The notes under the pieces were generated by a model that did no database searches, was not told the origin of the DNA, and saw only the letters and a program-made list of their open reading frames with translations. Positions 11,650 through 36,677 of a stretch of 64,000 bases of DNA are shown one piece after another (the first letter of the stretch is position 1; each line of letters begins with the position of its first letter). The stretch is taken from the NCBI GenBank assembly GCA_964304625.1, contig OZ199838.1, forward strand, positions 1-64,000, given 5' to 3'. Made by a program: the position numbers and the translations under genes. This DNA comes from Kudoa neothunni. Taxonomy: Eukaryota > Animalia > Cnidaria.

Positions 11650-11652
<3 letters not shown>

Positions 11653-11682
<30 letters not shown>
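11653..11682. repeat. (TA)n microsatellite
   Basis: About 15 AT units; similar tracts near 11821-11839 and 17760-17783. Confidence 0.9.
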
Positions 11683-11686
<4 letters not shown>

Positions 11687-13970: not shown

Positions 13971-13974
13971 TTAT

Positions 13975-14817: not shown

Positions 14818-15576
14818 TAATGGTATCAATTATCATATTCACTAAATTTTGATATTTTGAAATATTTTTATGATTAAGTTAAAGAAACATTTCAATATTT
14901 AACAAAAAAATATAATATTAAAAGTTAGCATATTCCAATTGTTCAATTTTAGCTTGTTTGAAACTTAAAGCGTTTAATTAAGTTGGGTCAAATAAAAATT
15001 TAACTGAGAAAGGTTTAGATTTGACTAAGTCTGTAAATTAGAATAGACAGAAAATATACGGTTTTTACGTCTTTAAGTAAGCATATTCATCATCAATTAA
15101 TTATTTCACGTTACCTCTAACCTACTAGTATAAGATAAAAAATATATTTTGGAAAAATAATTTTTTGCTTGAAAAAGTTATTATATAAGAAAGGTAATTT
15201 ATGAAATCAATTATTCCAAATTCTAGCTGCAGACATTATTAAGTGTCATCCACTGAATAATGTCGCATGATTTTGTTTACAATTAAATTATTAAAATATA
15301 ATTAATCCATGTTTTTTCAATTTTATTCTAATAATTTTTTTTTATAATTTTTAAGCCAACATTTTACATACATGTATTATAATATTAAAATTTCTTCACG
15401 CCTGTGTAATTCACAATATCCAAAACATGTATATTTCTCTTTAATATAATTAGTAGATGTAACATGCGATTTAATATTAGTTACATTAATAAGTTTATCG
15501 AATATCACTATAAATTGAATTAAATCCTTGCTATTGCATAATATATAAATCTAGCATAATTACATATAAACTTGTA

Positions 15577-17462
15577 GGGTTTCTCAATTGAACTCGGCAC
15601 CATTTTCATTTTGGTTCCAACAATAATTCATATTTAGACGTTTAAATCACTTAGATGTAACTATAAATTTAATTTTTAATAACGAATAATTAAAAGAAAA
15701 AAAAAATATATATATATACATATCTCGTAACTTACAATTATGATGACACTACTCTACATACTCGAATCATTGTGCTGTAAAGTTAATGTTTTGCAATTTA
15801 AATAATTATTTTTCTTTTAAACATATTTTTAAATATTATTAAAGATTAGAGCGTATATCCATATTAAGTTTGGTGTTAAATAGTGTTACTAAATTTCTTA
15901 CATAAATAGAAACAACAAAACTTTAAATCCGATATTTATATATTTTTTATTCTAAGATAATTTCTCCATGAGATGACCTGGTAATGTATCCTAACATTTT
16001 GCGGTAGAATCCATCGCATTGTTGTAGAGTAATTTCTTTAAAGCAATCATTAATGGTCACTCTTTCATTTTCATTTTTGGATTGCCTACAGATGACCAGG
16101 TTTATCCAAACAGAGAAGACATTTTCTATGGGATTAAGAAAATGGTTATAAGGTGGTAAATACCTTATTGGGATATTTTCTCTAACAACCAAATCTTTTA
16201 ATCCCGTGTAATGATGAATTTTGGCATTATCCTTTACGAAAATCGATTGATGCACACCTTTCGTTATACAGGAATTCTTAAAGTCCTCCCCTGTAACCGC
16301 CTTGTCGTGTATTTTGCTGTAAATTATTCTATTTTTATTTACAGCTGCGACAACAGAAATATTCCTACTTCTAGTAGCGAAACAAAGCAATAGGCTGACG
16401 TTCCTTTTAACGATCTATCTCTTTTAGGTCGCGTCACAACAGAGAACCCTACTTCATCGAGGAAAACAATACTCTCATGAGTCACCGTCGTTTTCCCAAC
16501 TCCCTGAACATTTCTGCATATTCCTTTCTTTTTTGAATGGTGGTTTCGCAGTTTCTTCTCTCCGGCATTCTCACTAAGTTTTTTAGAGTATAGTGAAATT
16601 GTCCAATCACCCTGTCGATTGTACTAAGCGACACAACAATTCCAAAATCCTCATGGACTTTATTTTTTCCTTCTGTTCGGGAGAAAGAACAGGTCGTCTA
16701 TTTCCGCCTCTAGGTTTCGGTTCAAGAGTTCTACTCATCCTGAATTTGGATAAAATAGACCAGACAGTAGACCCAGGCAGACGCATCTCCGATGCAATAT
16801 AGGTATCACTCCTCCCCTTTTCAAAAAAGTTGAACATTTGCTTTCTCAGTTCAGACGATATTGTTTTCCGTTGAACTCGTTTCTTAGGCTCCAAAATAAT
16901 TAGAAATTCATTGTCATCGGAAATAGAACCATCAGATTCAATTAAATTGTTATTTCTCTCTTCTGGATTCATTGCACTATGAAATTTCTTTGCGACAACG
17001 CAATTTTAGTAACCAATGAGTTCGGTCAGAAAACGTCACACGTGGTTTGACAGAATTAGAGAATTCTGATGATAAGACCATTATCTGAGATACGAAAGAA
17101 ACATATTCAGTTTACCATATTTTTAATGCGCTGCCTCGATCTTTTGATCGTATTTATTATACGAGGTCTTTTGTTCCTGAGTCTAAGGTTGATATTACAT
17201 TGTTCTTTCTATGATATAATTTTCTTAAAAATAAATTTTAAAGAGGAATTATTATATGGTACCTATTAAAGGTTACACAAAAATTTGTTGGGGAAATCGA
17301 ATTAAGCTTGTTTTTAACATGTAATATATTGTGTGTTTTCCATTGATATTTATTTATTTTTTTTTACGGGAATAACTAATAAACGTTTACTAAAAATATC
17401 ATTAATGTTCAAATATGAACTATTGTTGGAACCAAAATGGCGCCGAGTTCAATGAGAAACCC
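15577..17462 (-). mobile_element. Tc1/IS630-like DD34E transposon, decayed transposase ~16972-15947
   Basis: TA TSDs at 15575-76 and 17463-64. ~50-bp TIRs gggtttctcaattgaactcggcacc / ggcgccgagttcaatgagaaaccc. HTH N-terminus, FLDEVGF, and DNAKIH...YLPPYNHFLNPIE with 34 residues between D and E. Confidence 0.92.
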
Positions 17463-17832
17463 TATATAATAATTAACAGGCATGTTATTCATAATATAGA
17501 TTTTGTGTATTTTTGTATTATTGATATTATTACAGACAAATTAATTTCTTATATGGGAGATAAATAAATATTAATTTGTTCAACACACTGAACAATATAA
17601 AACCTAAAAATTAAAAATAACCTAACTTTACAAAATAAATTGAAACAATTTTAGTGGACAAAAAATTTTCTTTTAAAAAATAAAAAACAAGTACAAAATT
17701 TATAAAATAAAATAAATTATCTCCAGTATTTTTATACTTATTAAATTACATTAAATAAAATATATATATATATATATATATATCTATAATAAGCGTTTTT
17801 TTTTGATAATAAATGTAGAAATTAACTATTAA

Positions 17833-18929
17833 CTAGCGAAACTGCCCAGCGTTGCTTGGGGAAGATTTCGCATAGATACGCGTTTCTTAACAATATTCGA
17901 AAAATATATTAAAACCTAAAATTAACCCATAGATGCAAAATAAATAAAAAAATTTAAGCAAATATACTTTAACGATTTTGATTATGAAGTTTAAATTATG
18001 TTCATTTAAGATTTCGTGGCTCGGCACTAACGCTAAATAAGTTAAGGTCAGCATCGTATTTTTTTCATTCCTGAATTGTTTAAATCCCGTTTAAGGTTAT
18101 GTAAAACGTTATTTTTTGGCCGGAGGATTTTTAAAAGTTGAATTGTGGCCCGTTCGATAACTGCGTGTACCATTAACTTTTTAAGAGATAAAAAAATGGA
18201 GAAAGTAATAGAGATAGAAGAAAACGTATGAAAATTAATTGATATTGCTAAAATTAATATCCTTTGTTCCGCAAAAATTCTAATGCGCTTTTTATAACAA
18301 ATAATTAAAATAATCGGATGAAATAACCATCTGCACTTAATTGAATCACTGAAAGTTCAACATAACGGACGGTTTCAATGAAATCTACGGACACAACACT
18401 TGCGTTATAGTGCTTCAATCTATCTGATTATAACACATATAACCAACTAAATAATAATGCAAATATTGACATTTTTTCATATCTAAATCCATTGATAGAG
18501 CCTTCAGAATGTGCTTATCAAGTCAATTACATTAAAACTCCCGATATAAGGAATTTATTTGTGCAAACAATAAAATAAACGCATAAATCTTATATGTAAA
18601 GACAGATGGCATCATTCAATTAACATATGATAGAGTATATAAGGGAGATAGTTAACTTCAACCGACCATCACCATAACGTAAGCAAACGATAATCCTATA
18701 GTTGAACTCATGTAATACGATAAACAACTTTAAATCGACAAAATCACTATTTCATAAATACCATTTGGAAACTTTAGTAGTCCGAAAACAATTAAACGAT
18801 TTTTTAAATATCACAAATTTATAAAAATTTTATATATGACTATCTCTTTAGGGAAAAAGTTATCCGCACTTGCGTACTTAGGGGCATACACACACAAACA
18901 TACCGACAGTCCTCCTTTATATATATACA
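17833..18929 (-). mobile_element. non-autonomous Helitron
   Basis: On the minus strand it starts TGTATATATATAAAGG..TGTCGGTATGTTTGTGTGTG and ends CCCAAGCAACGCTGGGCAGTTTCGCTAG (hairpin+CTAG) followed by T. Confidence 0.7.
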
Positions 18930-18931
18930 TA

Positions 18932-19726
18932 CTAGCGCAAAAACCCCGCTTCGCTTTGGTTTCCTTGCCCGGCCACCCTGATAAAAGCCGTGAGCGGGCG
19001 AAGGTCATTTTAAGTTCAAAGTCAATTATAATTATCTTATCGACCTTTCTAGAACAGCCATAATCGAAATAAACAGCAATGACCCGATCATCATCACTTT
19101 CTTCGTCATCAGACTTTATTTTCATTTAGAAATCATAAGTTCTTACAAATCATGAGGCGTATTAATCGTTTTACCCAACCCGTCGATGAAACCGATGAAC
19201 TAACTAATCTAAAAGTTTGTTAACAATGTTTTACTTAATCATAACGTTCTAACATAATTTTATGTTTATTTAAAAAAATATAACTTTTTATCTTTAACTA
19301 AACGTGCAAAGTGAATAATATATTCAAGCGTATTGATTTATTAATTTCCCGTTTAAGCAACAAATCTTTGTTTGCACAGAAACCCCGCCCACGCACGAAC
19401 AAATGTTGTAATTCGTCTTAAGTACGTTCAAAAGTAGAAAAGAGTAAACTTTCAAAGTTTCAGTTGTATATAAATACAGAAAATTAGAGTTATCTACGAA
19501 TATCATTGAACATTATAGCGTATCATGTGCAGTGGTAATCTCATTGTCATCAGCGCTAATCTGTTTGAAAAAAGTTTACACTACAAATTAACCACTTTAT
19601 AAGAAAGTAGGCAACCTCTTGGTATTTTTTTAAAGTATACTAAGAAACTCAAATAGTCTAAAAAGTCTCTGTATGAAGAGAAGATTAATGCACACACAGA
19701 CACTACTACTTTAAATATATATATAT
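18932..19726 (-). mobile_element. non-autonomous Helitron (family with copies at 2135, 31735 and 49481)
   Basis: Minus-strand 3' end GCGAAGCGGGGTTTTTGCGCTAG|T; 5' end ATATATAT..GTGTCTGTGTGTG. Colinear homology to 49481-50068. Confidence 0.78.
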
Positions 19727-20022
19727 TAAATTTAATAAAGTACGTTGAAAGTTTAAATAACGTTTGCATCTCATGACTCCATAATTTTTTATCAATCGAT
19801 TAATTGAATTAATTCTTTATTATTTCGCCTAAAATCTTCCACCCCCAATCACTTTAATATTGATGTTCTGCGTCTGACACTCTAATATTATGCAATGGAA
19901 ATTTCTTCTTGTCTCCCTCTAAACATTTGTTTATGAATAAGTTGTTGGCAAGTAAACTATATCATTCGATCGCATCCCTAATTTTTTATAGAGTCAACCA
20001 TATTTTGCCTATACACACCAAG

Positions 20023-20152
20023 TGTGACGGATTTGCATATGTTATTTAACATTGCAATATAATAAACAATGGATAATCCATCTAAGCGGCATTTTATCTG
20101 TTATCATCATGAACAGTGTGTTTTTCTACAGCGTTACATTAAATTAATAACA
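20023..20152 (+). repeat. 5' LTR of BEL/Pao element
   Basis: Direct repeat of 25379-25508; TGT...ACA ends; followed by PBS. Confidence 0.95.
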
Positions 20153-23100
20153 TGGCACCCGATGCGGGACAATACACTCGGAAATTCTGTAATAAACGCT
20201 GCTGTCCTGCGATTGAGACGAAAATTAACTTGTTATCGAAGCAGCTCCAGTCTCACATGGACTGGACGGAAAATATAGACATTGCTGAACTCTGTAAAAC
20301 TAAGAAAAAACTTGCATGTCTTCTGAATCTGTATAAGGAATACGTCATAAACTTCGTTAATGGTGGAAATACAAACGATTTCACCGATTGTAGTAACATT
20401 ATTGTGGACGTCGAACTTCTGTTAAAAGATGCCGAAGAAATCATATCAAATGATCAAGAAATCTATTATAAGTCTGTTTACAACAAAGCCGAACAATATA
20501 GCTTAGAGCAAAATGAGGTTCTAACCTCTACCAGAACCTGCAACTCTAACGTACGTCTTCCGCCAATCAAACTCGAGAACTTTGGTGGTTCGTTGGAAAG
20601 GGTGGCCTTAATATTGGGGAGAATTTCCAATCCTTAATTGGAAATGACAATAATTTGAGAGTTTACACCAAATTATTGTACCTGAAGTCTACCTTATTCG
20701 GCGAACCAAAGAAAATGCTGAATGATATGCCCGCGGAAACACATGGATTACATAACCGCAGTGGAGATCCTTCAGAAGAGATATGATAAAAAGGAGACCT
20801 AGTCAGAATTTGTATGAAAAATTAGGGAATATGAATATTATTTCCAACTCCACTACGGATCTGCGTCGTGTATTTTATTTCATTTTTACGTCTGTAAAAA
20901 GAATTAAATTGCTAGATCTGTCTATGTCGGAAACATACATGATTCCGTTCCCAGCTATCAAATATCAAAACTGTCGAAATTCTTTCGATTGAAATTGGAA
21001 GAATCCAAAGTGAATAACAATTGGTCTCTTGAACTCTTGGAAACAACCAATGTGACTTCATTCAAACCCTTTAATAAAAACGTTAACAAACTCTAATTTC
21101 ATCAGCCGGTTACCAAAAGGCTTGAAATGTGCTTTCTGCAATGGCCATCATTACAGTGGATGATTGCAGAAAGTATATCTCAACAAAGGAGAGATCTAAA
21201 AAACTTGGAGAAAAATGTATCAAATGCCTGAAATTTCACAAGTCAAGAAATTGCTATCATAATAACGCGTGTTATCATTGTCAAATCATTGAATCATCAT
21301 CGTAGCCTTTGCCCGAAAAAATTCCAAACTCATTCAGAGAAGGTTCTTATAGCTCAAAAAAATGACTCTGAGGATATTCAACCTTGCGATATTGGTAATT
21401 CAATGAACGATAATTGTAACGTTCAATTATATTCTTCTGGACCTAACCAAGAAATCAACTCTGCACTCATTCCCACATTTAGAGCGACACTTGTCAGTCC
21501 ATACGATACCCATCATGTTGCTGATGCTAACATTATTTTAGATACTGGTAGTGCTTCTAGTTACGTGAGAGAAGATATTTAAAAAACTGGAACTAAAACC
21601 CATATCAAAAGGAAAAGTCACGGTCTCAACTTTCGGATCCTCCTCACCTAGATCTTTGAATTCTTCAACTGCATGGATTGGCATTAACAAACCTAATGAA
21701 AAGATATTTAAATTAATGGTTAGAACTGTCCCAATGATTTCCTCAAAAATTCAAGTCCCCTTACTTGATAATATTGTCAAAAATATATCGTGCACGGAGA
21801 AATTCGCCGATGAAATCTCACCCTATTCTAATGCTTGAATAGACTTGCTAGTTGGATCTAACTACTTCTGGAGAATCTTCGTTTCTAAGCTTGATCCATC
21901 TACTGGACCTATCAATTCTAATAAAAAACAATTTTTGGCATTATACCAACTGGGAACATGGTTGTGAGTGTACACGATGATCCATCTTGTGTATTCTTCT
22001 GTGATTATCCTCTCGACAAAAACCTTTCTCCTATAACAGATGTAAGCAGCGTGGAACCTTTCCAAACAGAGGTTTCAAAACTTTGGAAATTGGACTCGAT
22101 CGGGTATAACGGATGACCCACTTGACGAAGAACATACGATTTCTATTAAACATTTTAAAAGTACATTAAAATTCCAAAATAATCGATATCATATCAAATG
22201 GCCATTTAATGCTGATATTTCAAATTGCCACATAATTATTTCAACTGCCCGGCTCAATTAGCAAATTTAACGAAGAAACTATTGAATTCTGAAGAATTAT
22301 ATAAAATTTATTGTGATATAATCTGTGATCAACTGGAAAATGAGATAATAGAAATAGTCCACGAAAATCAACCAAGTTTAAAGGGATGTCACTACTTACC
22401 TCATCATATGGTAACTCCAACAAACAAACCAATGACAAAAAGTCGCATTGTATTTAATGCATAGTATAAATCAAATAAGCTTTCGAAAAGTTTTAATGAT
22501 TGTTTACTGGATGGACCTATGCTGTTGAATGATCTTACCGGGATTCTACTACGTATGCGATTCAAAAGATTTATAGTTTTTATGCGATATTGAGAAAGCG
22601 TTTCTGCAAATCGGTGTTTCAAGAAAGTGATAGAGACCTGACGAGATTCTTATGTATCAAAAATTTGAACAATGGCATTTCTAAAAACAATGTTTTGATA
22701 TATCGATTTAAAAGAGTTCCATTTGGAATAAAGGCATCTCCATTTATTCTTTGTTCGACTATAAAACATCACTTGGAAAGTTCAAATTCAAAACTATGCC
22801 GAAAAATTTTATCGAACGTTTACATGGACAATTTCATAATTGGATTAGATACTATTGAGGAAGTGATGACTGCTCGAGAAGAAATGATAAGTATTTTCAA
22901 AAAATGCTCAATGAATCTGTTGGAATAGAGCTCGAATTGCAATGAATTTAACAAATTATTTCCAACCAACGAGAAACTTCAATCAACACAGATAAATGTC
23001 AGGCTTAATCTGGAATACAAAATCTGACAGCCTGAGAATTGGAGGTTTCGGCACCAATTCTGCGATGTCCAAACGAGATGTGACAAAAACAATGATCCAA

Positions 23101-25362
23101 AGTATTCGATCCACTCGGATTTTTTTGTCCAACGATGTTGAAGGGCAAAATACTTCTGAAGAATTTATGGATGGAATCAAAAAATTGGGACGATTATATT
23201 GGTGACGAAGCCAAAAGTGAAATAGATAAAATAATGAATGATATTACTGGCATCGAAAAACTTGAAATTCAACGCTTCATTGATATTCAGGGTTCTGAGG
23301 AACCTCAACGAATCTCCTTTTCTGATGCGTCCATGAATGCTTATGCCTGCTGTGTGTACATTTGCTACAAAAAGTCTGGTTCATGGTATTCCAAGTTAGT
23401 TTTTGCCAAGGCTAGGAATAGCTCCAATGAAAAAGCTATCCATACCAAGACTCGAATCTCGAATTGATGGGAGCTATTATCGCTGGCAGTTCCTTGCATT
23501 TTGTTAAGAGCCAATTGTTAATTGATATATCAAAATGTATGCTCTTTGTGGACTCCAAATGCGTTATGTATTGGTATTATTCAAAAAAGAACTTATCGAT
23601 ATTCGTCAAAAATAGAATAAATGAACTCAAATGCAATTTGGATATAACAATCAAATATGTACTACTGCTGAAAACCCAGCGGATATACCTACAAGAGGAA
23701 TGCTCGTATCTGAACTGTCTGAAAGCTCTTTATGGTGGAATGGCCCGACTTGGCTACAATCGGATGAATCGTTATGGGAAGTCTATGCATGCTGTAGATA
23801 ACCTTAATATTCCTAATGAAGCGCTGGTCGAATTAGCAAAGCATGAATCTACGCAAATAAAAACATTGGTTGTTCAAGATTCAAATAATCACTTAATACA
23901 AAGTCCATTCTCTATTGAAATTGAAAATTTTACTAGTCTACTTAAGCTACTACGGGTTACCGCGCGGTGTAATCGTTTTTGTTATAACACTAGAGAAAAC
24001 ATCAAATAAATGGATGTCTTACGGCTCGAGAATTAGAAAGAGCTAGAATGATGTGGGACTTGTGGATTCAAAAAGCCATCTTCATGATATATACGAATCA
24101 GTTAAAATGGAGAACCTGTGAAAATCAACAACTTACCACGACTTTTTTTCGACAAAAATGATCTAGTCAGATGTGCTGGTCGACTTGATTTTGCCCAACT
24201 TGCATATGATGAAATTAATTCTAAATTGTTACCAAGACCAACAAAATACACGAAACTCATTATCATGGATGCTCATCTTAGAGCGATTCATGGTGGTGTA
24301 TCTTATACGCTTTCAGTGGTTCAATCGCAATACTGGATACCTAAAGGGCGATCTCAAGTTAAAAAATTCATTAGAAAATGTCATCAATGCAAAATACTAA
24401 AGAGTAAACCTTACAATGTTCCACCGTTTCCTGTCTCTAGAGTTAACGTATCTCCTGCATTCACTCATGTTGGCCTGGACTATTTTGGCCCAATTGGGGT
24501 AATGATTGGATCAGATAATGAAAAGGTCTGGATCTGCCTTTACTTTACACATGGTTTAGCTGTAAGGGCAATACACCTCGAAATCATTCACAATTTATCC
24601 GCTGAAGAGTTCTTGATGTGTCATCGTAGGTTTATCGCTCGAAGAGGGAGGACCGCTAGAAATTTTATCGGATAACGCAACACAATTCGGACTGGCTGAA
24701 TCCATAATAAAAGATTTTCTCACTAATAATGATGTAGTATGGAAATTCACACCAGCGTTTGCTCCTTGGAAGGGAGGCGTATATGAGAGATTAATCAAAA
24801 TTGTCAAAAACTGTTTTCAATATACCACCAAAAAGAATACTTAGCTTATCTCATCTGTCGACATTTTTATTCGAAATGGAAATGTGGTGAATAATCGACC
24901 ATTAACCTATGTTGATGCTGATTCCGTTATTCGCCCCATCACACCTAATGATTTCCTGATACTGAATCCACGACGTGATCCTTATATCTTAAAGCCTGAG
25001 GATGATTTGGAAACATTTCAAATGGATCTAAGGAAGGAACAAATTATCAATCATTGGAAAAAGGGTCAAAAATTACTTTCAGTATTCAATAATCATTGGA
25101 GAAGAGAATACCTATTGAGTTTGAAAGAAAGATACAACAACCGGTTGATTACTGAATCGCCTAGTGAACTGACACCTAAAGTTGGCGATATCGTTCTGGT
25201 GCATGACCAGGACTCAAGCTTAACTAGAAAATTGCTAGAGTCATACAGTTGCTAAAGGGTCATGATAATCAAATAAGGTCGGCGATGATTAAGTTTGGTA
25301 ACCGAAAGACATCTAAGAGATCTTTGGCTCAACTCTACCCCTTAGAAATTGATGGATTCTGA
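20152..25362 (+). pseudogene. BEL/Pao gag-pol polyprotein, frameshifted
   Basis: Domain order is Gag (RLPPIKLENFGG, three zinc knuckles), protease (ILDTGS), RT (RVPFG..SPF, YMDN), RNase H (FSDAS), integrase (H2C2, GLDYFGP, APWKGG) and C-terminal WRREYL..L. Confidence 0.93.
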
Positions 25363-25378
25363 ACTTAATTTGGGGGAG

Positions 25379-25508
25379 TGTGACGGATTTGCATATGTTA
25401 TTTAACATTGCAATATAATAAACAATGGATAATCCATCTAAGCGGCATTTTATCCGTTATCATCATAAACAGTGTGTTTTTCTACAGCGCTACATCAAAT
25501 TAATAACA
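25379..25508 (+). repeat. 3' LTR of BEL/Pao element
   Basis: Preceded by PPT and followed by TSD CCAAG. Confidence 0.95.
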
Positions 25509-25513
25509 CCAAG

Positions 25514-28500
25514 ACATCGCACACTCAACCCTGCTTTCGATTAGACTGTTCACATGGACGGACAATATGTATGCACAATTCATCGAATCATTCATCGCTA
25601 CGACGAACTAGGCGAATACAAGAGAGGAGAGTTGTGGAAACAACAATATGGCCTGAGTGTGATTTAGAATCACAGTGAATGCATATTTCAAATCGAAATC
25701 CACTTGCTTCTATTTCTTCTCAGGAGTCACACCAACACTCACAACGTAATTGCCGACAAGCAAAGAGAACGGAGACGAGAAGCAAATAGAGTAAGCAATA
25801 GAAATCGACGTGTACATGAGACGACTCAACAGAGTCCTGCAGTGTCACCTATAAATAAACACAATACAGGATCAGACAGTAAATTTGTACCTGAACCTTA
25901 TTACACTCCTGTTCTATTAGGTCAACAAACGCGAAGTATGCCTGATGATACTTGGAATATGGTCGCTTTGCATTACGACCTCTGCTACAACATGGAAATG
26001 AAACGAATATTACAATTTGGAAAATGTCGAAAATTTGTCCAAAATGCCGCGCTAAGAAGTGGATAAACGAATTTTCGGGTATGTGTTGTTCCGGCGGTAA
26101 TGTTATTTTGGACACACTACCTGATTCATCTCATTTTCTATGAAGACTCCGGAATTTCAAGACACTTTCTACAAAATATCCGAAAATACAACTGCACTTT
26201 CCAGATGACATCTTTTGGAGCGAACGTAATTTGTAGGGACAGATTCATGCCTACTTTACTTTTAAGGTTCACGGTCGAATGTGTCATCGAATTGAATCGC
26301 TATTGCCTTCTGAAAATGAGCAACGAAATTCTTGCGATTATATTTCATACAAAACATGTATTTTCAAGCTCAAAATCGATCCAATATGTATCTCTAGCAT
26401 AGGCATGATATTATTTTAGCGCTTCAAGATATGTATGTTACACAGACACACTAGCTACATCCACAGTTTTAGGCATGACTTAGAAATGCACCCGTCTTCT
26501 GATTTTGATATAATTATAAACTCTGATAAGCTTCCACAGGGAGAAAATGAGAGAAAATACAACTCTCCAACTTGAAATGAGGTGGCCATCGCAATGTCGG
26601 ATGAGCAGCATTGTACGAAGGATATTGTTTTGAGGAATAAGGATAACAGAATATAAAGAATAAGCGAAACACACAGATCGTATGATGCATTACAATATCC
26701 ATTAACTAATGTCTATGGTCAAGATGATTACCATTTTTGTATTTCACAAATTGACGCAAACAAAAGTGTTTCATGTCAGAATTTTTATTCTCTCCATTTT
26801 ATGGAAACGGAAAAGAATTTTAACACGCATCATCACTTTAGGACATTATTCCAACAATATGCTGTAGATATGTTTGTGAAGAGGGAATCAGAGAGACTTT
26901 GTTTTATCAGAGCGAAACAAGATGAACTTCGTATTGAATCTTACATCAATTTAATTGATAGCATTAGTAGCAACGGTGAAATAAATGGGCGGGGACGGTT
27001 GTATACTTTGCCATCGACTTTTGTAGGTTCACCATGCTATATGAACGTGAAAATGCAGCCTGTTGTTGTAACTAAGTTATGAATGCTAGCGCCAGTAAAA
27101 GAAAACAGTTTGAAAGTAAAACAACAAAGGGGATTAGACTAATGATAAATTACTACAATGTTTAAATGCTACATTTTTGTATTGAAGCAACCCGCGTTGT
27201 GGCGTGAACTCGTCGTGGAATACGTGATGTTTGGAGATATTCATTTACCGGCGTCTTGTAGGATAAGGTTATGAAATGGATGTTAAGGAATGAGTATTTC
27301 TATTTGTTGAATATTGGGAAGAATCATTTACGATGATTATGAATCACATTAGTCGGTTGCTAGGAAAAAGTTAAGTGTTGTACTTTGGAGCTGGGAGGAG
27401 GTTATAATACTTAACGTTGTTAAAAGAAGAGATTATGTACATGACACTTGCCATGACCTACGTTCGATGTTTTAGAGGGCCAGACCTATTTATAACATTC
27501 ACATGTAATCCATTTTGGAGTTAACTGAATGAAGAGTTATTTCCTAGCCAAGCATCTAAAGGGAGACTGGACATAGTAGATAGAGTATTCAACTTGAAGT
27601 TAAATGTTTTGATGATTTTAATTCATAAATTGAAGTTTTATGGTGAAATTCAGTGTTATATGTATAGTATTGAGTGACAGAAAAGAGGGCTTCCACACGC
27701 TCATATATTGATCTAGATGAACCAGAAACTGCGTTCCAATGATATCGACAAATTCATATCGAACGAATTACCAGACCCAGGTGTAGATCCAGTATTGCTC
27801 CAGATTGTAAGAACAACCATGGTCTCTGTGGTGCGTTGAATCCAAAAAGCCCATACATGTATGATCAGAGAGAATGCACCAAAAACTATCACAGACGGAC
27901 ACTGAAAGATATCATGTTTACAGAAGACCTGAAGATGGGGTTTTGGTGCGTCAATCCATCTGAACAACGATAGGGAAATCATCATAGAAAATAAGTGGAT
28001 TGTTCCCTATTGTCCTTTGTTGACGAAGATTTTCAATACTCATATTAATGTAGAGTATTACAATTCAGTCAAGACCCCCAAATATATATGCAAGTATGTA
28101 AACAAAGGTTTTGATGCGACCATGTTTGCTGCTAATCAAGAAGATCGTTTGGATGAAGTTTCCAATTACCAGCCTGGTCGCTACATAAGCAGTAGTGAGG
28201 GATTTCGGAGAACGGTCAGCGTATTTATTTCACCGACGAAACTTTGTTGAATCGGTTACAAAATCCAAAGGGACACGAGATTAACCGCTTTTTCAGCCTA
28301 TGCCAGAATGACGAATTCGCTCTGTCTCATCTTATTACATATGGTCGGATAATAGTTTGGCATTGGGAAAAGAGGATGTCCAGTTGAAGGCCATCCAGGC
28401 ATACGATTCGACTCTACAATAGGAAGAGTTTACAGTGTACATCTTTCACATCAAGAATGTTTTTATTTGAGGATGTTGCTCCATTGTGTAAATGGGCCTA

Positions 28501-30340
28501 AAACTTTTGAAAATCATAAAAAGGTTCACGGCCAGGTATATCCAATATTCCTTGAAGCGTGCAATGAAAGTGATTTGTTGAAGGGAGACAACCACTGAGA
28601 ATGTATATTAAGGGAAGCTGCTCATGCAAACAGTCCACGTCAATTACGAAAATTATTCGCACAGTTGATCAGAAATTGCGAAATGCGCCAGCTTCATAAA
28701 CTGTGGTTACTTTTTAGGAAACCTATGTCGGAAGGTTAGCGGTATCAACTGTAACAAACCAGTTTAATGCCAAAGGTGATTTTTAATTCTGACATTTTTA
28801 ACATGACCCTAATTGACACAGACAACACTTGATTCAAATGGATGGAGTAATGTTAAATTCATACGGATTTCCTCATTTGGACAAAACATTTTGCGTCCCT
28901 CTTCCAAACGAAATCCAGAGAGAGTTTCCTACAACACTGAACAATTATCCGAGTTGGTTGAAATAAACATGACGAAACTGACAACTGACCGACAATTTGC
29001 ATTCAAAACAGTGTTGGGGAGCATTTATTACGATATAGGTGTTTGTAACGTTTTTTTTTTGGTGCACCAGGTAATATAGTTCAGAAATTAATGACAAAAC
29101 TTTTATTTGCCTAATTAAGAATAGATTCTAAAATTTTCTCGCTGTTGCTTCTCCGGGTATTGCAGCCACTTTATTACCAGGGAATGGCACGGCCCACAGT
29201 ATATTTATGTTGCTAATCGCGATTAAGGGTGATGGTGCCGAAGTATGTGCAATCAGAAAGGAAGCAGGTTTGTCCCAATTGTTGACCAGATGCACGATCA
29301 TCATATGGGATGAATGTACGTTGGCAAACAGAGTGTTTTTCGTAGCTTTAAATAGAAGAATAAGGGATTTAGCATACAAAAACATTCCATTTGGCGGAAT
29401 CACAATGATTTTGTCCGGCGATTTTAGTTAAACTCTACCCTTAATAACGAGAGGTACAAGATATGACCAAGTAAAATGTTCCATAAAGTTCTCTTCCACA
29501 TGGGCAAACGTTAAACCATCCATCTCACCGCCAATATTTGAGTGCAAATCATCAACGAATAAGGAGCCAGTCAATCTATTTCAGAAATACTACGGATTGG
29601 TGATGATCAACTTACCATTGAGTCCGATGGATGTATCCTCTATGCTCCGTGCCAAACCTGGTTTTGTTCATGGATGAATTGATAGACCGTATTTTACTAG
29701 AAATACAAACAAACTTTTCATACTCAAATTGGCTCTCAGAACGAACTATCTAAACCCCCACAAACCATTCCGTAAACAAAATCGATGATAGATTGATTCG
29801 TCTTATTCCAGGCGACTCTTCAGTGTATAAACCATATGTCACTGTTGTGAACAAATATCAGTGTGTCAATTTCCCTGTTGAATTCCTCAACAGTCTAGAC
29901 TCTAGAGCTTTCGGGGGTTCCTTCGCACAAGATTCTTCTAAAGTTAGCCATTCCAATTATATTGATAAGAAGTTTAGATTCACCAAGGTTGTGTTACGGC
30001 ACTCGTTTAATGGTAAAGTCGCTAATGTCTTATCTTATTTTGGCCACTATCGTAACTGGTTGTGCCTAAGAGAATGTAAATATTCCGATTGCCCCTTCAG
30101 ACGCCACCTTTAATTTTAGAAGACTGCTATTTCCCATCAAACCATGCTTTGCAATGTTCGTAAATAAGACCCAGGGGGAAACCTTCAAAGTTGCCAATTT
30201 AAATTTGGAGGAACCGCGTTTTTCTCATGAGCAGTTGTATGTCGCCAACTCCAGGGTAGGTTCCAAACACAATTTATACAGTTTTTCTCCAAATGAATGG
30301 TCGGACCAAAAATATAGTTTATAGGGAGATATTACGGTAA
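25514..30340 (+). pseudogene. Helitron Rep/PIF1-helicase pseudogene (element probably extends to a 3' hairpin near 31660-31690)
   Basis: CPKCRAKKW..GMCC zinc finger, YNCTFQMTSFG, QQYAVDM, PDLFITFTCNP, HUH motif E*QKRGLPHAH, YICKY, helicase IIWDECT, ILSGDF, NKTQG and QLYVANSRV, ending KNIVYREILR*. Heavily disrupted. Confidence 0.92.
27064..27446. mobile_element. probable solo LTR inserted in the Helitron Rep gene
   Basis: A 383-bp non-Helitron block with TGT...ACA ends splits the conserved motif GSPxYM..MQ / AMTYVR. The flanks CCTGT and CTTGC could be a degenerate 5-bp TSD. Confidence 0.55.
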
Positions 30341-30449
30341 CTGGCTATGCTATCATTTCTTATCTTTATGGATCTTACTCGCCTATTTAAATTCAGTGTT
30401 TATATAAATTTCATTCAAATTTATTTATATGAAACAATGTTTCTTTGAT

Positions 30450-31200
30450 TTTATTTTTCGGAATATATCTACCATGTTATGTGGAACATTATTGTATCAT
30501 CATTAAGCGATATAAGTAGAAACTTTACACGACACACTTTTGTTTGCCAATTTTTGGAGTGCAAAACTGATAACATTCATCATCCCCGACATTTAATTTT
30601 GGGTGTTGCAGTAGGTTATGCGATTATTGTGCTTCGATTATTGTTTGAAGTGTGTTGCGTTAATTTTACAAAAAAAATGTCTAATACTTCACGCTGCTGA
30701 TCTAACTTTATGGGGACCATTAATAGTGACTTGAAGTGTTATATCAACCTCTATTTACTTAAGAATGCCATTAGTATCTTTCATTGAAATAGGATGAGAA
30801 ATTGGGTGGATTTCCAAACAATCTAAAAATGGTAGGTTTGGCTATTTTGCTTGTTAAACATATCTTGGTTGTTAGAAAAATACGTATCTGTATCTATTCT
30901 GGGAACGTGTTGCTGATCAATTCTGAGTTTGCATATGCAAATCTTCCAAGAAGTACATTTTGTAAAATGTCGGTTCGCCATCGTCTTAAAGCTACTACGA
31001 TCCAATTCCAAGACCAATTTGACCCCAAATCTTAAAGTAACAACAAATCCTGATTAAATAAACGCGTTAGATCTAAAAGTGGCTTTGTATTATGTTGTTA
31101 TATCTTTGAATATGCTTGTGGAAGTATTTTGAATTTTGTTTGTCTGCATTTTTCAAAATTTAGTGTTTGACGAAATTTCGCTGGTAAGAGTTTATAAGAT
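30450..31200 (-). pseudogene. possible hAT (ZNF862-like) transposase C-terminal remnant
   Basis: Minus-strand LQVTINGP resembles the LxIxINGP motif of this hAT group; otherwise heavily decayed. Confidence 0.3.
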
Positions 31201-31734
31201 TTAATGTTAAAAATTTAATCTACCACATTGTTATAAGTATGATTCAACTAACAGGCCCCTAAAAGAATTCAAGTGAGAATTCAATTTCTTATTCTATATC
31301 CCTTTATACGTTGACTGTATAGTTGTATTCCGGTGTAATTCCTCACGTATACGTTGATTTCTATTTGCTTTTCATGGTTTCTTAAAACCACGGATGCAGC
31401 AAATAATGATGATGAGATTTAAACGAAATGAGGTTCATTTATTTGTATTAGGTTTTTTTCTTTTTCTTCTTAAATATAAAAACTAATTACATTATTAAGT
31501 AAAATTTTGTTATATTTCGTTTATGGCTGTTTATTTTGCGCAGTAAATTTTCGACAAATATTTGTGCTATTAACATAATGAAACGTTTATTATTTTAAAA
31601 AATATAATTTAAATCATTTTTTTTTTCAATTTTTTTCCTGAATTAGATATTCCCAAAACCTCGAGCGTAGCCGGGTATAACGACTCATGTTTGTATTATT
31701 TATCTAAATATTCTTAATTTACTTTAAACTGACA

Positions 31735-31812
31735 TGACCATGACCTACTCAGGGCTTTAGTCTACTTGGCCGGGCAAGGAAGTTCGCGCGAAGCGGGGCT
31801 TTGTCGCTATAG
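31735..31812 (+). mobile_element. Helitron 3'-end remnant
   Basis: ggccgggcaaggaagttcgcgcgaagcggggctttgtcgctatagt is homologous to the 18932/49481 terminus in the opposite orientation. Confidence 0.6.
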
Positions 31813-31974
31813 TTTTATAATTAGCTGTTAAAAACTTATTCCTAAAAACATTAAAAGAATTCCCCCCAGATTGTTATTGATTTTAATATCCCCACATAAT
31901 ATAATTCCTAAGGAATTATATCATGCATCCCAAACCGATTATGCAAAAATTTATACATCTAATTTTGACGTTAC

Positions 31975-32041
31975 TTAGTTTACCCCCTGTCTTTTATATT
32001 TTACTCCCAAGGGTAAATTTATCCCCGGTTGAGAACGCCTG
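31975..32041. mobile_element. hAT-like MITE end
   Basis: gggtaaatttatccccggttgagaacgcctg; the reverse complement CAGGCGTTCTCAACC resembles Charlie/Buster-type hAT TIRs. Confidence 0.4.
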
Positions 32042-32786
32042 CGTTAAAGGGTTAATGGTATCAATGAAGGTTCTGCAATTTTAATTTTGGGAAAAATTAA
32101 AAAAATAATCATTAATTATCTATTACACTTATATACTTATACATTTATTCATTTTTGTCCATTCATATCTCATATAATGAAAATTCTTGATAAGTATTTG
32201 TGATGAATTAATTGATAATGTCAAAATGCTTCTCATTGAATGTCTCCATCTTTATATAATTCCATCCATCAAATAGAGATGAATTTATTCATTTTGTTTT
32301 TATTTGATCATTTAGTTTAATTTAATATGAATAGAAAGACAATGCATTATCGGTGATGATGATGATGATTTGATTATATTTGATCACGTGGAATTTAATA
32401 ATCTAAAAACCTTCGGGTATTAATTGTGACTGTGACTTTCATATTTAGAATACAAAAGTTATGCTATTAATAATTACTTATTAAATCAAAACTTTTAAAA
32501 CTATTAAATTTAAAGAAAATTATAATTCCACAAAAATAAATAACTAACAATTAAATATCCTAAATGTAATACACTTACAAATTGCACTACAATACATTTT
32601 ATTAAAATTGAATAGCATTCATTCCTTCTATTATTAATTATCTATACAGACTCCTATTATAGATATAATTTGTATAAGCTGATTAAAACATTTCTTGTAT
32701 ATATTTACGATTGTGTAATAACCTAATAAACTAATCTAACAAACTGCCGATAAGGAAAGTCAGAAGCCATAACAAAATTTTCGACT

Positions 32787-35700
32787 ATGTTCAATCAACT
32801 AATATGTAAAAACTATTATTATTTAGATTGACTAATTAGTTGCATAGACTCCGTGTTGTTGATGACATTGTCATCTTATTCCACTACTCCTCTAATAGAC
32901 TATAGTGATAGACACGGTGCGTGTCATTACTATAACGTAACAAGGAATAACTATCTTATACAACGTGAATTATTAACATCATTATCTCAACGTTGCAGTA
33001 AACGGTTGAATTTCCTTCAAAACAGCAAGAAAAATTATGAATCTCACACAGATATAATGAATACGAAGATGTTGCATGATATGTATAATATATACAAATT
33101 TTGGGGGATTCATTGGTTTAAAATCTATGAAGTAGAACTATTTAAACAATATACTAAAGGCGGGTCAATAGTGCAAAAGGATATTGATACTCGAAATCGT
33201 TGCGAAAGAGCCGTCAATTGTCTCAAAAGCATCAAGAATATATTTCCCTTGATAAATAATTTTTTAGAACATTCTAAGAAAGCACAAACATTATTAAACA
33301 CAGATATCGAATTTTTCCAACATGTAACTCGTGAGGATTATAATGATTGTATGTCTCATCAATTAAGTCTGGATATACAAACTTCAATTCCAAAAATGCA
33401 AAATTCCACACATATAATACAAGTTTCCATACAAAATCTAAATAGTTATTATGAAAAAACATATCACTGCAAGAATGATCCCACTGTTGAGCTTATTGCG
33501 TCAATTGAAGAGAGAAAACAAAACATGTTTCCTTTCTATACTAAAATGACAGAGGCAATGGTTCCATACTTTGGAAAAATAAAATCTGATATGCAATCGT
33601 TTATCACAAAGTACAATCAAGAATTGTTTGAAAGTTATTTGAGTAATTCTCAAAATTTCAATTCAATTCTACGTAATTTGAACATTGGAAGCGTGTCGAT
33701 CAACAAAGCAGATGAAATTCAAAGTTTGCTGAAAAAAACACAAAGTGATTTTTCAACAACGACTTATATCTCGCCTGATTTGTCGAATAAAATGACACAA
33801 ATAATTGATAAACTAAAAGCAGCGCTTGAATCGTATAAAAATCAGATTACCAAAACTAACGAACTTCAAACTGAAATTAAGAAAACAATACAAAATATAG
33901 AAAAATTACCTAAAGCCACTTCTGATGCCATTAAACGCATAAAACCTATAAAAGAGAAAATTGATGATTATATATCACAAATTGACCAACTCCCGTCAAT
34001 ATCCGGATTACGAAAGCGAATGTTTGCCGGTAAACGATTAAACAATCTAATTCAAAACTTTTTGAATACAGAACAATTATTTGGCAAAAAATCAAATCTT
34101 GAGTTTGAAGATGTTGAAAAATTGTATACTCAAGTTGCTAAAGATGTTAAACAGTGGGAAAAAACTTTCAACCAATTGAAAACTGAGAATACAGCTACTT
34201 TAAATACCTACCAAACGTTGAAATCTGAAATCAAAACCATAACAACAGTAGAAATTCCACAGTATCAAAGAAAACTTAATCAGGGAAAATTAGATAAAAT
34301 GCTACCCTTTACAAATCCCGCCACCAAATTGAATGATATTGATATTCGAAACGAGAAATTGTTAAGCAATATGGCTTCTCATGAATCCATCATTGATTCT
34401 AATAAATTAACAACAATAGAGGATAGTTTGACCACAGCGTATAAAACCTTACAAGAAGTAAGGACTAATAATGATAATTACAGATTGTCAGTCTCCAAAA
34501 ATAAACCCTCATTCCTCAAAACCAAAGCTAGTGATTTATCCAGCTTGTTTTCTAACATGGTTGGTGTAACCGAACGTAAATTAGACGAAATTAAACTAAA
34601 AATTGGGGATTTAAAATCCAAACTTGTTGATATTAAATCCCAAATAAACGAAAGTAGGCCATCTAAAAATGATATCAACAGACGTTCTCAAAAATTAACC
34701 CAAGATTATGCCAATATAGAACAAGCAAAAAAACGAATATCAGCTGAGATAAATACACCGCCTGATCAATTTGAAGCATTGATCTCAAAAGAAACTTTAA
34801 GTTTAAATTTCAGTCTAGATGAACACACTAAAAAACTATCAGATGATATGAAAAACTATGAAAAATCCTGTGAAAACATTGGGCACAATATTTCGACGAT
34901 AGTTGATGCGATTAACAACGTGAAATTACTGAAAGATAGTTATGAAACAGAAGTTAAGAATATTAAAAGTTTGCATTTCAGTATGGTGGAATCACTTGGC
35001 TCTGAACTGAAAACAGCCGAAATCAAGGAACAAACTCTTTTCGCAACTTACAGAAACGAACTCGACGATTTATTTAAAAAATACAAGGAAGTCATACAAG
35101 AACAAAAAGACAATTATAAAATAGATGAGGATTATTATACAAACTCCATCAGAAAAGCTAACGATAAAGTAAATGAAATTAAAAGAATTAGCGATAGTCA
35201 ACAAATTGCGCAACTTTTAGATGGAAAACTCTCGGTAAATAATAATTTTTTGACTTTCAATAACATGAATATCGCGAATAATAAATATGTGACTCAAAAA
35301 GAGGCTGAACTGAACAATACTGAAGGTGAATATTCGTCAATTTCTACCAGCTATGACGTGAGTAGCGCAGCTTTGGAAACCATCAAGAGTGCAATTTCGT
35401 ATCTACTTAAAAGCTATAATGAACTTTATAGTGAGAATTCTGCGTTAATAAACACCGAGACAGCGAATAAAATTATAAAAGCTAACGCTGAATTGAAAAA
35501 CAATTTTGAATTATTCAAAACCACAACCGACATTATGGGACAAAAATTGACACAATTGTCCACGATCGAAAACCGCATAACTAGTGAGATTGCTGATGGA
35601 AAACGAATGATTGGCGAGCGCTCCAAAAGCGTTACCAATGAAAAAATTAAACACGACTCATTCTTTGAGGAACTGGAGTCACTCAAACAAACAGCCTTAA

Positions 35701-36677
35701 AAATTAATGAAGCTAATAGAATACTCGGTGAAAAGAAGAGAAATCTTGCAGAATTCTTGGAATCTTCCAAAACTCTACATGAAACAAACATTGATACGAT
35801 AGAGAATAAAAAAAACGAAATTTCAACTCTTGGTCAATCGCAGACTGTTATATTAAAAAAAAAACAAGCTGAAACTTTGGAAAAATACAATGAATACGAT
35901 CGAGCCCATAAAGTGCTTGTAGTCAAAGCCGAAAATTCAAAATTCGATTTTAACGAAGATTTTGGAGCAATATATAATAAAATTGGAGTTTTAAAACAAA
36001 GTTTGGATGACATTTTTAAAGAAAATATTGAAAAAATTTCAAATGCTGTTTTGGAAGGGTCGAATCATTATAATGGTGAGAAGACTACTCTTAATGGTGG
36101 ATATAACGACAAGAAATCTAAAGCCGACGGCTTCTTAACACAAATTGATTCATTATCAAAGAAAATTGTTCCAATAACCACATGGAATGAGTTTGATGTT
36201 ACATACCAAGAATACACCACATTAATCTCATCAATCGATAGTTTCCTAGATCAAAATAAAAAATCTGTTGAAATTAACGAATATAATGTCGAAATCCAAG
36301 CGACTATTCACGCCGAAGTAGAAGCGTTTATGAAAGATCTTGAAGTTGCCTTAGATGGTGATAAAAAACGATTTGAGATTTTAGAAAAAAACGCATCGTC
36401 AACTGGAGAAATTGAAGTTGAAAGACAAAAGAAGGATGAATCCGAAATGTCTGTCCAACTTGAAGATTTCAAAATGGAACCTAGTGATTCAGATAGCTAC
36501 GTCGCAACCATAGGAGAGTCTAAAAATATATCATCACAAGATTATTTCAAGACTATTATGGCAATTTCTGCGGTGGTCTTGGTTGCTATGGCAATCGCTG
36601 GTGCTGTAATACGATACAGAAGCGTCAAAAAGAATGAAATTTACGAAAAATGTGAAAATATTTACGTCAAAGCATGA
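32787..36677 (+). CDS. orphan 1282-aa type I single-pass membrane protein: signal peptide, long alpha-helical/coiled-coil ectodomain, TM helix, short Tyr-motif tail
   Basis: Exon 1 is 32787-32805 (ATG), the intron is 32806-32847 (42 nt, GTAAAA..GACTAAT..CATAG) and exon 2 is 32848-36677 (TGA). Splicing gives MFNQLIYSVLLMTLSSYS, which is signal-peptide-like. The 3.8-kb exon is uninterrupted and K/E/N/I/L-rich with heptad-like character. TM IMAISAVVLVAMAIAGAVI; tail RYRSVKKNEIYEKCENIYVKA. Confidence 0.9.

Follow-up and report, generated by a model that had tools for sequence, protein, structure and literature searches.

The 64,000-nt window analysed here (positions 1 to 64,000 of contig OZ199838.1, assembly GCA_964304625.1, Kudoa neothunni) contains an intact gene which is one of about 23 copies of an undescribed, fast-diversifying family of long, predicted rod-like membrane proteins. 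Eleven of the 23 loci lie within 270 kb of four of the six chromosome ends of this myxozoan muscle parasite of yellowfin tuna, and the family is organised much like the variable surface-antigen families of protozoan parasites. The best reading is a lineage-specific, host-facing variable type I surface protein, for which expression, localisation and function are untested.

The gene had been described in the initial annotation as an orphan giant helical surface protein, and as the only intact long gene of the window. The structural observation was confirmed, as all of the listed features are present. The open reading frame at 32853-36677 (+) has 1274 codons and is by far the longest in the window, the next one being a gypsy RNaseH-integrase remnant of 326 aa. 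In this sequence of roughly 30% GC, simulated neutral change of only 2% already introduced about five stops, indicating that the frame is not open by chance. A start mini-exon and a short intron complete a signal peptide. The ATG, donor and acceptor are conserved in paralogues, and the more distant subfamilies also have a start mini-exon and a phase-1 intron of 42-44 nt at the same place, while one paralogue (locus L011 in the numbering of family loci used here) carries an uninterrupted classical signal peptide instead. Signal peptide and transmembrane (TM) helix were assigned by eye and hydropathy only, and the type A signal peptide has no basic n-region. Cysteines are found at positions 24, 48, 117, 123, 166 and 206, and then only at 673 and 1267. 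The sequence is rich in K, S, L, I, N and E, the hydrophobic peak is at about residues 1231-1253, and AlphaFold predicted an all-alpha structure with helices of up to 160 residues. Exon 1 is too short to be searched and the spliced protein was not assembled; all searches were done with exon 2. Self-BLAST of the sequence found no internal repeats. Rfam and tRNA scans of the window returned nothing, the telomere repeat (TAAACC)n is absent from it, and a bacterial promoter/terminator scan was disregarded as irrelevant to a eukaryote. The features are collected in Table 1.

Table 1. Features of the gene and its flanks (window coordinates; residues numbered along the open reading frame; C1, C2 and C3 are contigs of the assembly; AF2, AlphaFold model).
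Feature	Coordinates	Strand	Description	Basis
Segmental-duplication block	4259..32903	.	Transposon-rich, upstream of the gene, shared with other chromosome ends; inner boundary inside the gene	4259-32903 is 99.0% identical over 28.7 kb to C1 17.019-17.048 Mb; 3625-33642 is 98.6% identical over 30.1 kb to C2 11.964-11.994 Mb; 21023-35897 is 94.3% identical to C3 19-34 kb; 9139-20022 and 25503-33234 match C3 at 2.33 Mb; transposon domains detected
5' flank	32640..32786	+	Conserved, putative promoter and 5' UTR (function inferred only), shared even with divergent paralogues	Conserved blocks in L005 and L007, near-identity in L002-L004
Exon 1	32787..32805	+	19 nt; start codon, 5 more codons and first base of a split codon (N-terminal part of the signal peptide)	ATG and GT donor conserved in six paralogues; same mini-exon design in the other subfamilies
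Intron	32806..32847	+	42 nt, phase 1, GT..AG; its in-frame TGA is removed by the splice	Length fits the published median intron of 49 bp for this genome (PMC12239612); no RNA evidence
Exon 2	32848..36677	+	Rest of the signal peptide, ectodomain, TM and tail, including the stop codon	Sequence and composition
N-terminal domain	32892..33767	+	Cys-bearing, elongated antiparallel helical bundle (predicted), residues about 14-305; Cys 24, 123, 166 and 206 conserved across the family, Cys 48 and 117 subgroup-specific	Cys conservation; AF2 pLDDT 80.6, pTM 0.64; generic three-helix-bundle matches only
Rod or stalk	33777..36395	+	Long, all-helical (predicted), residues about 309-1181; helices of 50-160 residues	AF2 on the 20-row family alignment, mean pLDDT 78.5, pTM 0.32, global arrangement uncertain
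Linker	36396..36551	+	Acidic, variable, low-confidence, before the membrane	pLDDT 33 at residues 1181-1200; variable, gapped region in the family alignment
TM helix	36552..36611	+	Residues 1234-1253	Hydropathy maximum 2.7 at 1235
Tail	36612..36674	+	21-aa basic cytoplasmic tail with a nearly invariant K-x-x-I-Y-x-K-C-E-N-x-Y/F-x-K-A end	Invariant columns; 22 copies genome-wide, all in this family; pN/pS 0.29-0.45 over TM and tail

A paralogue search, one of the checks suggested beforehand, showed that the gene is not an orphan within the genome. The assembly comprises 40.26 Mb in contigs of 17.15, 12.04 and 11.05 Mb plus about 18.2 kb, with a GC content of about 30% (PMC12239612). Of the about 23 related loci, 6-8 are intact (1276-1284 aa or about 2060 aa), about 6 have only frame breaks and about 7 are decayed. 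Three of the loci (C1 5.36 and 5.38 Mb, C2 1.95 Mb) are known only from genome search hits. Several frame breaks are located in A7-A9 runs and could be sequencing errors. The concentration at chromosome ends has a binomial probability of 4e-10, although the copies are clustered and thus not independent, and twelve of the 23 loci are chromosome-internal.

The gene sits at the edge of a block of 28-30 kb which is 98.6-99% identical at other chromosome ends. The 5.85 kb upstream of the gene is 97-98% identical over its full length at five other family loci, and over 4.6 kb at a sixth (C1:17.083 Mb). Identity breaks off inside the gene at a different point in each copy (32903, 33234, 33642 and 35897), so that the copies are mosaics. 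The same chimeric pattern was seen in the synonymous divergence: for L001-L002, dS is 0.02-0.07 in codons 1-500 against 0.38-0.65 beyond, while L002-L003 shows the reverse. This conclusion rests on a low-coverage assembly whose long-range structure at repeated chromosome ends was not verified with long reads. The DNA record covers the stretch without joints.

Selection was examined by pairwise comparison, as had also been proposed beforehand. Intact frames persist at 22-36% nucleotide divergence, where neutral change would give 44-60 stops. In recently diverged tracts, pN/pS is 2.25 (Sd 12, Nd 111, P=0.0024) and 2.67 (P=0.0027), whereas the TM and tail are under purifying selection. Whole-gene pN/pS is about 0.9-1.0, which is also what relaxed constraint gives. 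The excess above 1 rests on short tracts, on a simple Nei-Gojobori count in an AT-rich gene and on sequences that recombine, and not on a recombination-aware codon model.

No detectable homology to anything named was found, orthology to a conserved housekeeping protein having been stated in advance as a refuting outcome. A Pfam scan gave only sub-threshold noise, and word-index protein searches with the whole protein and with a profile of the C-terminal 150 aa gave nothing, as did an ESM Atlas feature search in terms of usable hits. A sequence profile search of the PDB returned only coiled-coil noise (keratin, lamin and coronavirus HR1 at E 0.01-0.3). An exhaustive HMM search of 1.84 billion representative proteins with a 20-row family profile found one true fragment (P0001, 105 aa, E 2.7e-23, 35-40% identical), originating from a 526-bp ENA metagenome contig at 30% GC. 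The ten other hits look like repeat or coiled-coil noise, and a literature search for the metagenome sample code gave nothing relevant.

The predicted structures were compared with known folds, since a match of the N-terminal region to the RH5/PvRBP fold had been put forward as a test of the likeness to Plasmodium reticulocyte-binding-like proteins (RBL/RH). Searches with the whole ectodomain and with the N-terminal domain against the PDB (Foldseek and two VIA-align passes), ESM Atlas and BFVD gave nothing above helical-bundle noise. Foldseek gave no match at E<=0.001. The only PvRBP2b row (6d03_E, Z 8.1, rmsd 9.3 A, 166 aligned) matches residues 465-633 of that chain, which is its C-terminal helical part and not the RH5-like domain, and the score is below the stated noise level of the method for helical bundles. 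No RH5 entry appeared in the second VIA-align pass. A weak or missing match does not prove that the fold differs. The N-terminal domain also gave weak matches to the trypanosome haptoglobin-haemoglobin receptor HpHbR (4x0j, Z 8.0-8.1, rmsd about 9 A, 213-217 aligned), which are within helical-bundle noise as well.

The interpretation given in the initial annotation, a convergent host-attachment adhesin or receptor maintained by selection amid dead transposons and resembling RBL ligands in architecture only, is thus partly supported. The two-exon plan, the type I topology, the maintenance by selection amid dead transposons and the lack of detectable homology are supported, while the orphan status and any specific likeness to the RH5/PvRBP fold are not. 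Host attachment itself was not tested. Diversifying selection and chromosome-end mosaicism fit a host-exposed variable protein, which is broader than, and not the same as, an invasion ligand.

Comparison of the copies showed the concentration of the family at chromosome ends next to large near-identical blocks, the mosaic members produced by exchange between copies, the faster accumulation of amino-acid than silent changes in the ectodomain, the conservation of TM and tail, and the presence of decayed copies alongside intact ones. The topology and the function, in contrast, are inferred from sequence. In this view, the protein enters the ER through its signal peptide, inserts as a type I membrane protein and displays about 1,210 residues outside the cell, as a membrane-distal helical bundle of about 300 residues, probably disulfide-stapled, on a very long all-helical stalk. 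The tail would be kept in the cytoplasm for a common sorting or anchoring partner. The topology is suggested by the signal peptide conserved in three subfamilies with the intron at the same site, by five basic residues just after the TM and an acidic segment before it, and by the even number of conserved Cys (four family-wide plus two in this subgroup). The most likely function, held with only slightly better than even confidence, is a host-exposed, variable surface coat or attachment protein whose diversity is generated by ectopic recombination among chromosome-end copies. There is no evidence on expression, splicing or localisation for this reading: three metatranscriptome runs under the same species label gave zero reads on the stretch, which is no test, and very few parasite RNA reads are reported for the genome (PMC12239612). 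Moreover, the muscle stage of Kudoa lives inside muscle fibres, and it is therefore not evident which host factor would drive the variation. Going further, a protozoan-style antigenic-variation system in a cnidarian parasite is not excluded but is considered unlikely. In such a system, a chromosome-end archive of intact and broken genes for a giant helical coat protein would be reshuffled by ectopic recombination, and only one or a few genes, sharing a conserved promoter region, would be expressed at a time on the parasite surface.

Among the alternatives, a parasite-internal structural or adhesion protein, for example one holding together the cells within the plasmodium or taking part in spore or valve formation, is unlikely but the most probable of them. 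On this reading the family would evolve fast simply because a helical rod tolerates substitutions, and not because the host sees it. The same topology evidence applies, the whole-gene pN/pS is compatible with weak constraint, a long rod would suit a spacer or tether, and about half of the loci are chromosome-internal. However, pN/pS is significantly above 1 in the recently diverged tracts, and mosaic exchange, a pseudogene reservoir and chromosome-end clustering are typical of contingency families and not of structural genes. A structural role would also not need about 20 divergent copies. A decaying, functionless family of recent duplicates that happen still to be open is very unlikely: many copies carry stops or frame breaks, pN/pS is near 1 and RNA evidence does not exist, but five full-length copies stay open at 22-50% nucleotide divergence, where simulation predicts 40-60 stops, and the purifying selection on TM and tail speaks against it.

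Equally improbable is an intracellular tail-anchored coiled-coil protein of the golgin or KASH/nesprin type, a localisation that had been named at the outset as contradicting the surface reading. The giant helical body and the C-terminal TM and tail, the most conserved part as in KASH proteins, would fit. Nevertheless, a signal peptide is conserved in all subfamilies, the charge distribution around the TM places the tail in the cytoplasm, the tail has no proline and hence no proline-rich KASH ending, and neither spectrin, golgin nor GRIP/GRAB domains were detected in Pfam. Paired conserved Cys occur in the N-terminal domain, and diversifying selection and multicopy chromosome-end organisation are not expected for such housekeeping tethers. 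A transposon- or virus-derived envelope or fusion glycoprotein is given as little weight. It is suggested by the signal peptide, large ectodomain, TM and short tail as in class I envelope proteins, by the position downstream, on the same strand, of gypsy-type integrase remnants, by the long upstream block shared between copies, and by the marginal profile hits to coronavirus HR1 peptides (E 0.2-0.3). Similarity between copies, however, stops about 100 nt after the stop codon with no shared 3' LTR. The divergent intact copies L005 and L011 lie outside the shared block: the 1.5 kb 5' flank of L005 is only 31-74% identical, and neither locus appeared in the upstream-DNA search. The shared block itself contains unrelated, older transposon insertions, the BFVD fold search gave only phage tape-measure noise and no envelope match, and there is no fusion-peptide or furin-site organisation and no Pfam env domain.

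The closest systems are the chromosome-end contingency surface-antigen families of protozoan parasites (Plasmodium var/SICAvar, Trypanosoma VSG, Babesia ves). The multicopy organisation with enrichment at chromosome ends, intact genes beside pseudogenes, mosaic genes, diversifying selection on the part taken as exposed, and a conserved anchor or tail and 5' flank are shared with them. There is no sequence or fold relationship, the organism carrying the family is an animal, the family is small, and nothing shows switching, mutually exclusive expression or even surface location. With the RBL proteins (RH/PvRBP/Py235) the gene shares a short signal-peptide exon plus one very large exon, a large, mostly helical type I protein with a C-terminal TM and short tail, and a small multigene family. 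It is half their size or less (RBLs are about 2,500-3,000 aa), and shows chromosome-end mosaicism and omega above 1; no expression or localisation data are available on apical-organelle location and host-cell receptor binding. The trypanosome three-helix-bundle receptors (HpHbR, ISG65; VSG-like fold) likewise have an elongated antiparallel helical bundle standing on the membrane with a membrane-distal tip, but they are about 250-450 aa and GPI- or TM-anchored, while the present protein adds about 900 residues of further helices. Lineage-specific surface families were reported for the myxozoan Sphaerospora molnari (bioRxiv 10.64898/2026.02.11.705288). Those are Cys-rich (VSP-like) or small two-TM types (RIFIN/STEVOR-like) in another myxozoan lineage, and a helical-rod family is described neither there nor in the Kudoa genome paper.

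Myxozoans are economically important fish parasites, and Kudoa spoils the flesh of tuna and other fish. How they deal with the host at the molecular level is almost unknown, because most of their genes have no recognisable relatives. The family described here, for which no sequence or fold relatives were found beyond the metagenome fragment, would be a concrete candidate for the host interface of Kudoa. It would also give markers and antigens for diagnosis or strain typing, and would be an example of convergent genome architecture for variation in an animal parasite.

A single open reading frame of 1274 codons dominates the window, while the next longest ORF in the 64 kb encodes 326 aa and is a gypsy-type RNaseH-integrase remnant. 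The window has a GC content of about 30%, and simulated neutral substitution of the coding sequence at only 2% divergence already introduced about five stops, so a frame of this length is not open by chance. The start proposed in the initial annotation is an ATG. Inspection of the sequence revealed a short first exon followed by a GT..AG intron, the removal of which eliminates an in-frame TGA. The ATG, the donor and the acceptor are conserved in six paralogues. The two more distant subfamilies have their own ATG mini-exon and a phase-1 intron of 42–44 nt at the same place in the hydrophobic core, while one paralogue (L011) has no intron and carries a classical uninterrupted signal peptide. This is good comparative support for the signal peptide, although no signal-peptide predictor was applied and the exons were not joined for any analysis: all searches were done with exon 2, exon 1 (19 nt) being too short to search. 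Short sequence blocks upstream of the start codon are conserved even between paralogues whose coding regions are only about 40% identical at the protein level, making them candidates for a shared promoter or 5' UTR element. Cysteines were found at residues 24, 48, 117, 123, 166 and 206, and then only at residues 673 and 1267. Hydropathy peaks at about residues 1231–1253 and is followed by 21 residues. AlphaFold run on a 20-row family alignment predicted an all-alpha ectodomain with helices of up to 160 residues (mean pLDDT 78.5); the pTM of 0.32 leaves the overall arrangement uncertain. The gene and the features listed for it in the initial annotation were therefore confirmed.

Coordinates of the gene, of its surroundings and of related sequences (positions refer to the window unless a locus is named).
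Feature	Position	Strand	Remarks
Open reading frame	32853-36677	+	1274 codons
Exon 1	32787-32805		begins with the ATG
Intron	32806-32847		42 nt, GT..AG, phase 1
Exon 2	from 32848
Conserved upstream blocks	32640-32786		equivalent blocks in paralogues L005 and L007
Shared upstream block	about 4.3-32.9 kb		28-30 kb
Ends of high identity inside the coding region	32903, 33234, 33642 and 35897		a different point in each copy
Older repeat inside the shared block	28204-31685		about 3.5 kb
piggyBac-type transposase (DDE_Tnp_1_7)	56604-58031	-	two adjacent ORFs of 257 and 215 aa
Further piggyBac-type fragment	7266-7754	+
Gypsy/Ty3-type RNaseH-integrase and integrase zinc-finger remnants	40916-41896; 24118-24675	-; +
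Remnants of a MULE transposase, a Tc1/mariner-like DDE_3 transposase and a pogo-type CENP-B_N domain	9360-9752, 15947-16390, 60091-60489	+, -, +
Window start	1-600		no (TAAACC)n telomere repeat
Frame breaks in paralogue L016	L016:3222-3289 and 4429-4442		A7-A9 runs
Frame break in paralogue L017	L017:4115-4137	reverse	A7-A9 run
Frame break in paralogue L012	L012:2790-2808		A7-A9 run
Long form L019	L019:944-7129 (contig C2, 1.829-1.835 Mb)		also C2:1.949 Mb and C1:5.364 Mb
Metagenome fragment	L037:193-510		ENA ERZ28624939, sample SAMEA5316497; 526-bp contig

The assembly comprises 40,260,978 bp in four contigs of 17,154,348, 12,040,071 and 11,048,340 bp and, by subtraction, about 18.2 kb. The published genome of Kudoa neothunni, recovered from yellowfin-tuna HiFi data, has 40.2 Mb, an N50 of 12.0 Mb, three chromosome-scale scaffolds plus a circular mitochondrial genome, 30.4% GC, a median intron of 49 bp and 45.6% repeats (PMC12239612). 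The transposon remnants surrounding the gene (piggyBac, gypsy, Tc1-like, pogo and MULE) fit the repeat-rich genome described there, with five different TE superfamilies occurring within 64 kb. The piggyBac-type transposase is interrupted by a single break, and the stretch of higher GC content at 20–30 kb (36–38%) coincides with retroelement remains. Although the window begins at base 1 of the largest contig, no telomere repeat was found there; the genome paper reports a telomere at only one chromosome end.

The gene had been regarded as an orphan, which did not hold. The search for paralogues proposed along with that view was done in six frames over the whole genome with the protein as query, and revealed full-length relatives at 60, 49, 41 and 27% identity plus many partial or broken ones. 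The 51-residue segment containing the TM and the tail occurs 22 times, always in this family, and a profile of the N-terminal domain identified about 19 of these loci and nothing else. In total, about 23 loci were recognized. Five are strictly intact genes of 1276–1284 codons, and one (L019) is an intact long form of about 2060 codons. The long form shares only the C-terminal 540 residues, TM and tail with the 1280-aa family (26% identity), while it has a different Cys-bearing N-terminal region of 1500 residues and its own signal-peptide mini-exon. Two further open frames of 2061 and 1001 aa were seen only as rows of the genome search. About six copies display one to three frame breaks but no in-frame stops, and about seven are clearly decayed. 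Several frame breaks in otherwise stop-free paralogues sit exactly in A7–A9 runs, and could be real frameshifts, homopolymer errors of a low-coverage HiFi assembly or slippage-prone tracts. Eleven of the 23 loci lie within 270 kb of a chromosome end, at four of the six ends; the binomial probability is 4e-10, but the copies are clustered and hence not independent.

The region upstream of the gene is near-identical to other places in the genome, with 99.0% identity to the right end of chromosome 1, 98.6% to the right end of chromosome 2 and, over a shorter tract, 94% at the left end of chromosome 3, while it is partly present at 2.33 Mb of chromosome 3. An older repeat within this block is present at about 82% identity in more than 15 places in the genome, and was therefore already in the block before the latter was copied between chromosome ends at 97–99% identity. 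In each of the places sharing the upstream block a family member abuts the block in the same orientation, and the high identity ends inside the coding region at a different point in each copy. Similarity ends about 100 nt after the stop codon. Synonymous divergence tells the same story. The family copies L001 and L002 differ by a dS of 0.02–0.07 over codons 1–500 and of 0.38–0.65 beyond, while L002 and the copy L003 differ by 0.38–0.56 in the first 200 codons and by 0.05–0.22 afterwards. L002 is therefore a chimera of an L001-like 5' part and an L003-like 3' part. The junctions were not examined with long reads; however, the 3' half of the window's gene has no near-identical copy anywhere, the best match showing 55–66% amino-acid identity, so that a simple assembly switch between paralogues is unlikely.

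Selection, the estimation of which had also been suggested beforehand, was evaluated by pairwise comparison of the copies. Whole-gene pN/pS between the closer intact copies is 0.9–1.2. In tracts that diverged recently, non-synonymous change clearly exceeds synonymous change: pN/pS is 2.25 for L001–L002 over codons 1–500 (Sd 12, Nd 111, P=0.0024), 2.67 for L001–L003 over codons 301–500 (P=0.0027) and 1.30 for L002–L003 over codons 301–1240 (P=0.027). These are Nei-Gojobori counts in an AT-rich, recombining gene, and no site model was run. In contrast, the TM and tail gave values of 0.29–0.45, with P=7e-6 for constraint in the deepest pair. Five genes remain open at 22–50% nucleotide divergence, where neutral change would produce dozens of stops. 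This means that selection keeps the reading frame and the anchor while favouring or tolerating change in the ectodomain.

Sequence searches revealed no named relative of the protein. No domain was found in Pfam, no hit was obtained in a word-index protein search and no usable hit in a search of ESM Atlas features, while a sequence profile search of the PDB returned only coiled-coil noise. An exhaustive profile search of 1.84 billion representatives gave one convincing hit, a 105-aa fragment (E 2.7e-23) which is 35–40% identical to residues 232–337 of the family. It is encoded on an ENA metagenome contig at 30% GC and is the only relative found outside this genome; its source organism was not identified. 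The family therefore exists in at least one other sample, probably a related myxozoan.

The model of the N-terminal domain (residues 14–310, pLDDT 80.6, pTM 0.64) is an elongated antiparallel helical bundle. A fold comparison with RH5/PvRBP had been put forward as a test of the proposed resemblance to Plasmodium ligands. Foldseek against the PDB found nothing at E<=0.001, either for this domain or for the whole ectodomain. VIA-align gave Z values of 8–10 to generic three-helix bundles, microtubule inner proteins, BAR domains, the trypanosome haptoglobin-haemoglobin receptor (Z 8.0, rmsd 9 A) and residues 465–633 of PvRBP2b (Z 8.1, rmsd 9.3 A), all of them below the level given by the tool as noise for helical proteins. 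Searches of ESM Atlas structures and of BFVD gave nothing. The specific RH5/PvRBP comparison is therefore not supported, the likeness being one of general plan only. Overall, the interpretation offered in the initial annotation was supported in part.

Several features place the long helical part outside the cell and the tail in the cytoplasm, namely the conserved signal peptide, four family-wide conserved Cys in the N-domain plus one extra pair in this subgroup, an acidic linker before the TM and five basic residues directly after it. This argues against a golgin- or KASH-like tail-anchored protein, the alternative that had been named in advance as one that would refute a surface role. Furthermore, no spectrin or golgin domain was found in Pfam, and the tail contains no proline, whereas KASH peptides end in a proline-rich motif. 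A retroelement envelope origin is also unlikely, as the copies share no 3' LTR and no viral fold was matched. In addition, L005 and L011 do not carry the shared upstream block: the 1.5 kb 5' flank of L005 is only 31–74% identical, and neither locus appeared in the search with the upstream DNA. A purely internal structural role cannot be excluded, but it explains the diversification less well.

Contingency surface-protein families at chromosome ends are well established in protozoa, and a 2026 preprint proposes other, unrelated surface families in the myxozoan Sphaerospora molnari. The present helical-rod family is not described in the K. neothunni genome paper or in the other papers searched, and has no recognisable relatives.

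From the sequence it is inferred that the protein enters the ER and inserts as a type I membrane protein, displaying a long helical rod with a disulfide-stapled distal bundle. The comparison of copies, on the other hand, shows that the family diversifies by ectopic exchange between chromosome-end copies and by positive selection on the ectodomain. The nearly invariant tail (K-x-x-I-Y-x-K-C-E-N-x-Y/F-x-K-A at the C-terminus) is retained, presumably for a shared cytoplasmic partner. Neither the life stage carrying the protein nor its binding partner has been identified, and the functional assignment is by inference only: this is the organisation of a host-exposed variable surface protein, serving as a coat, an attachment molecule or both.
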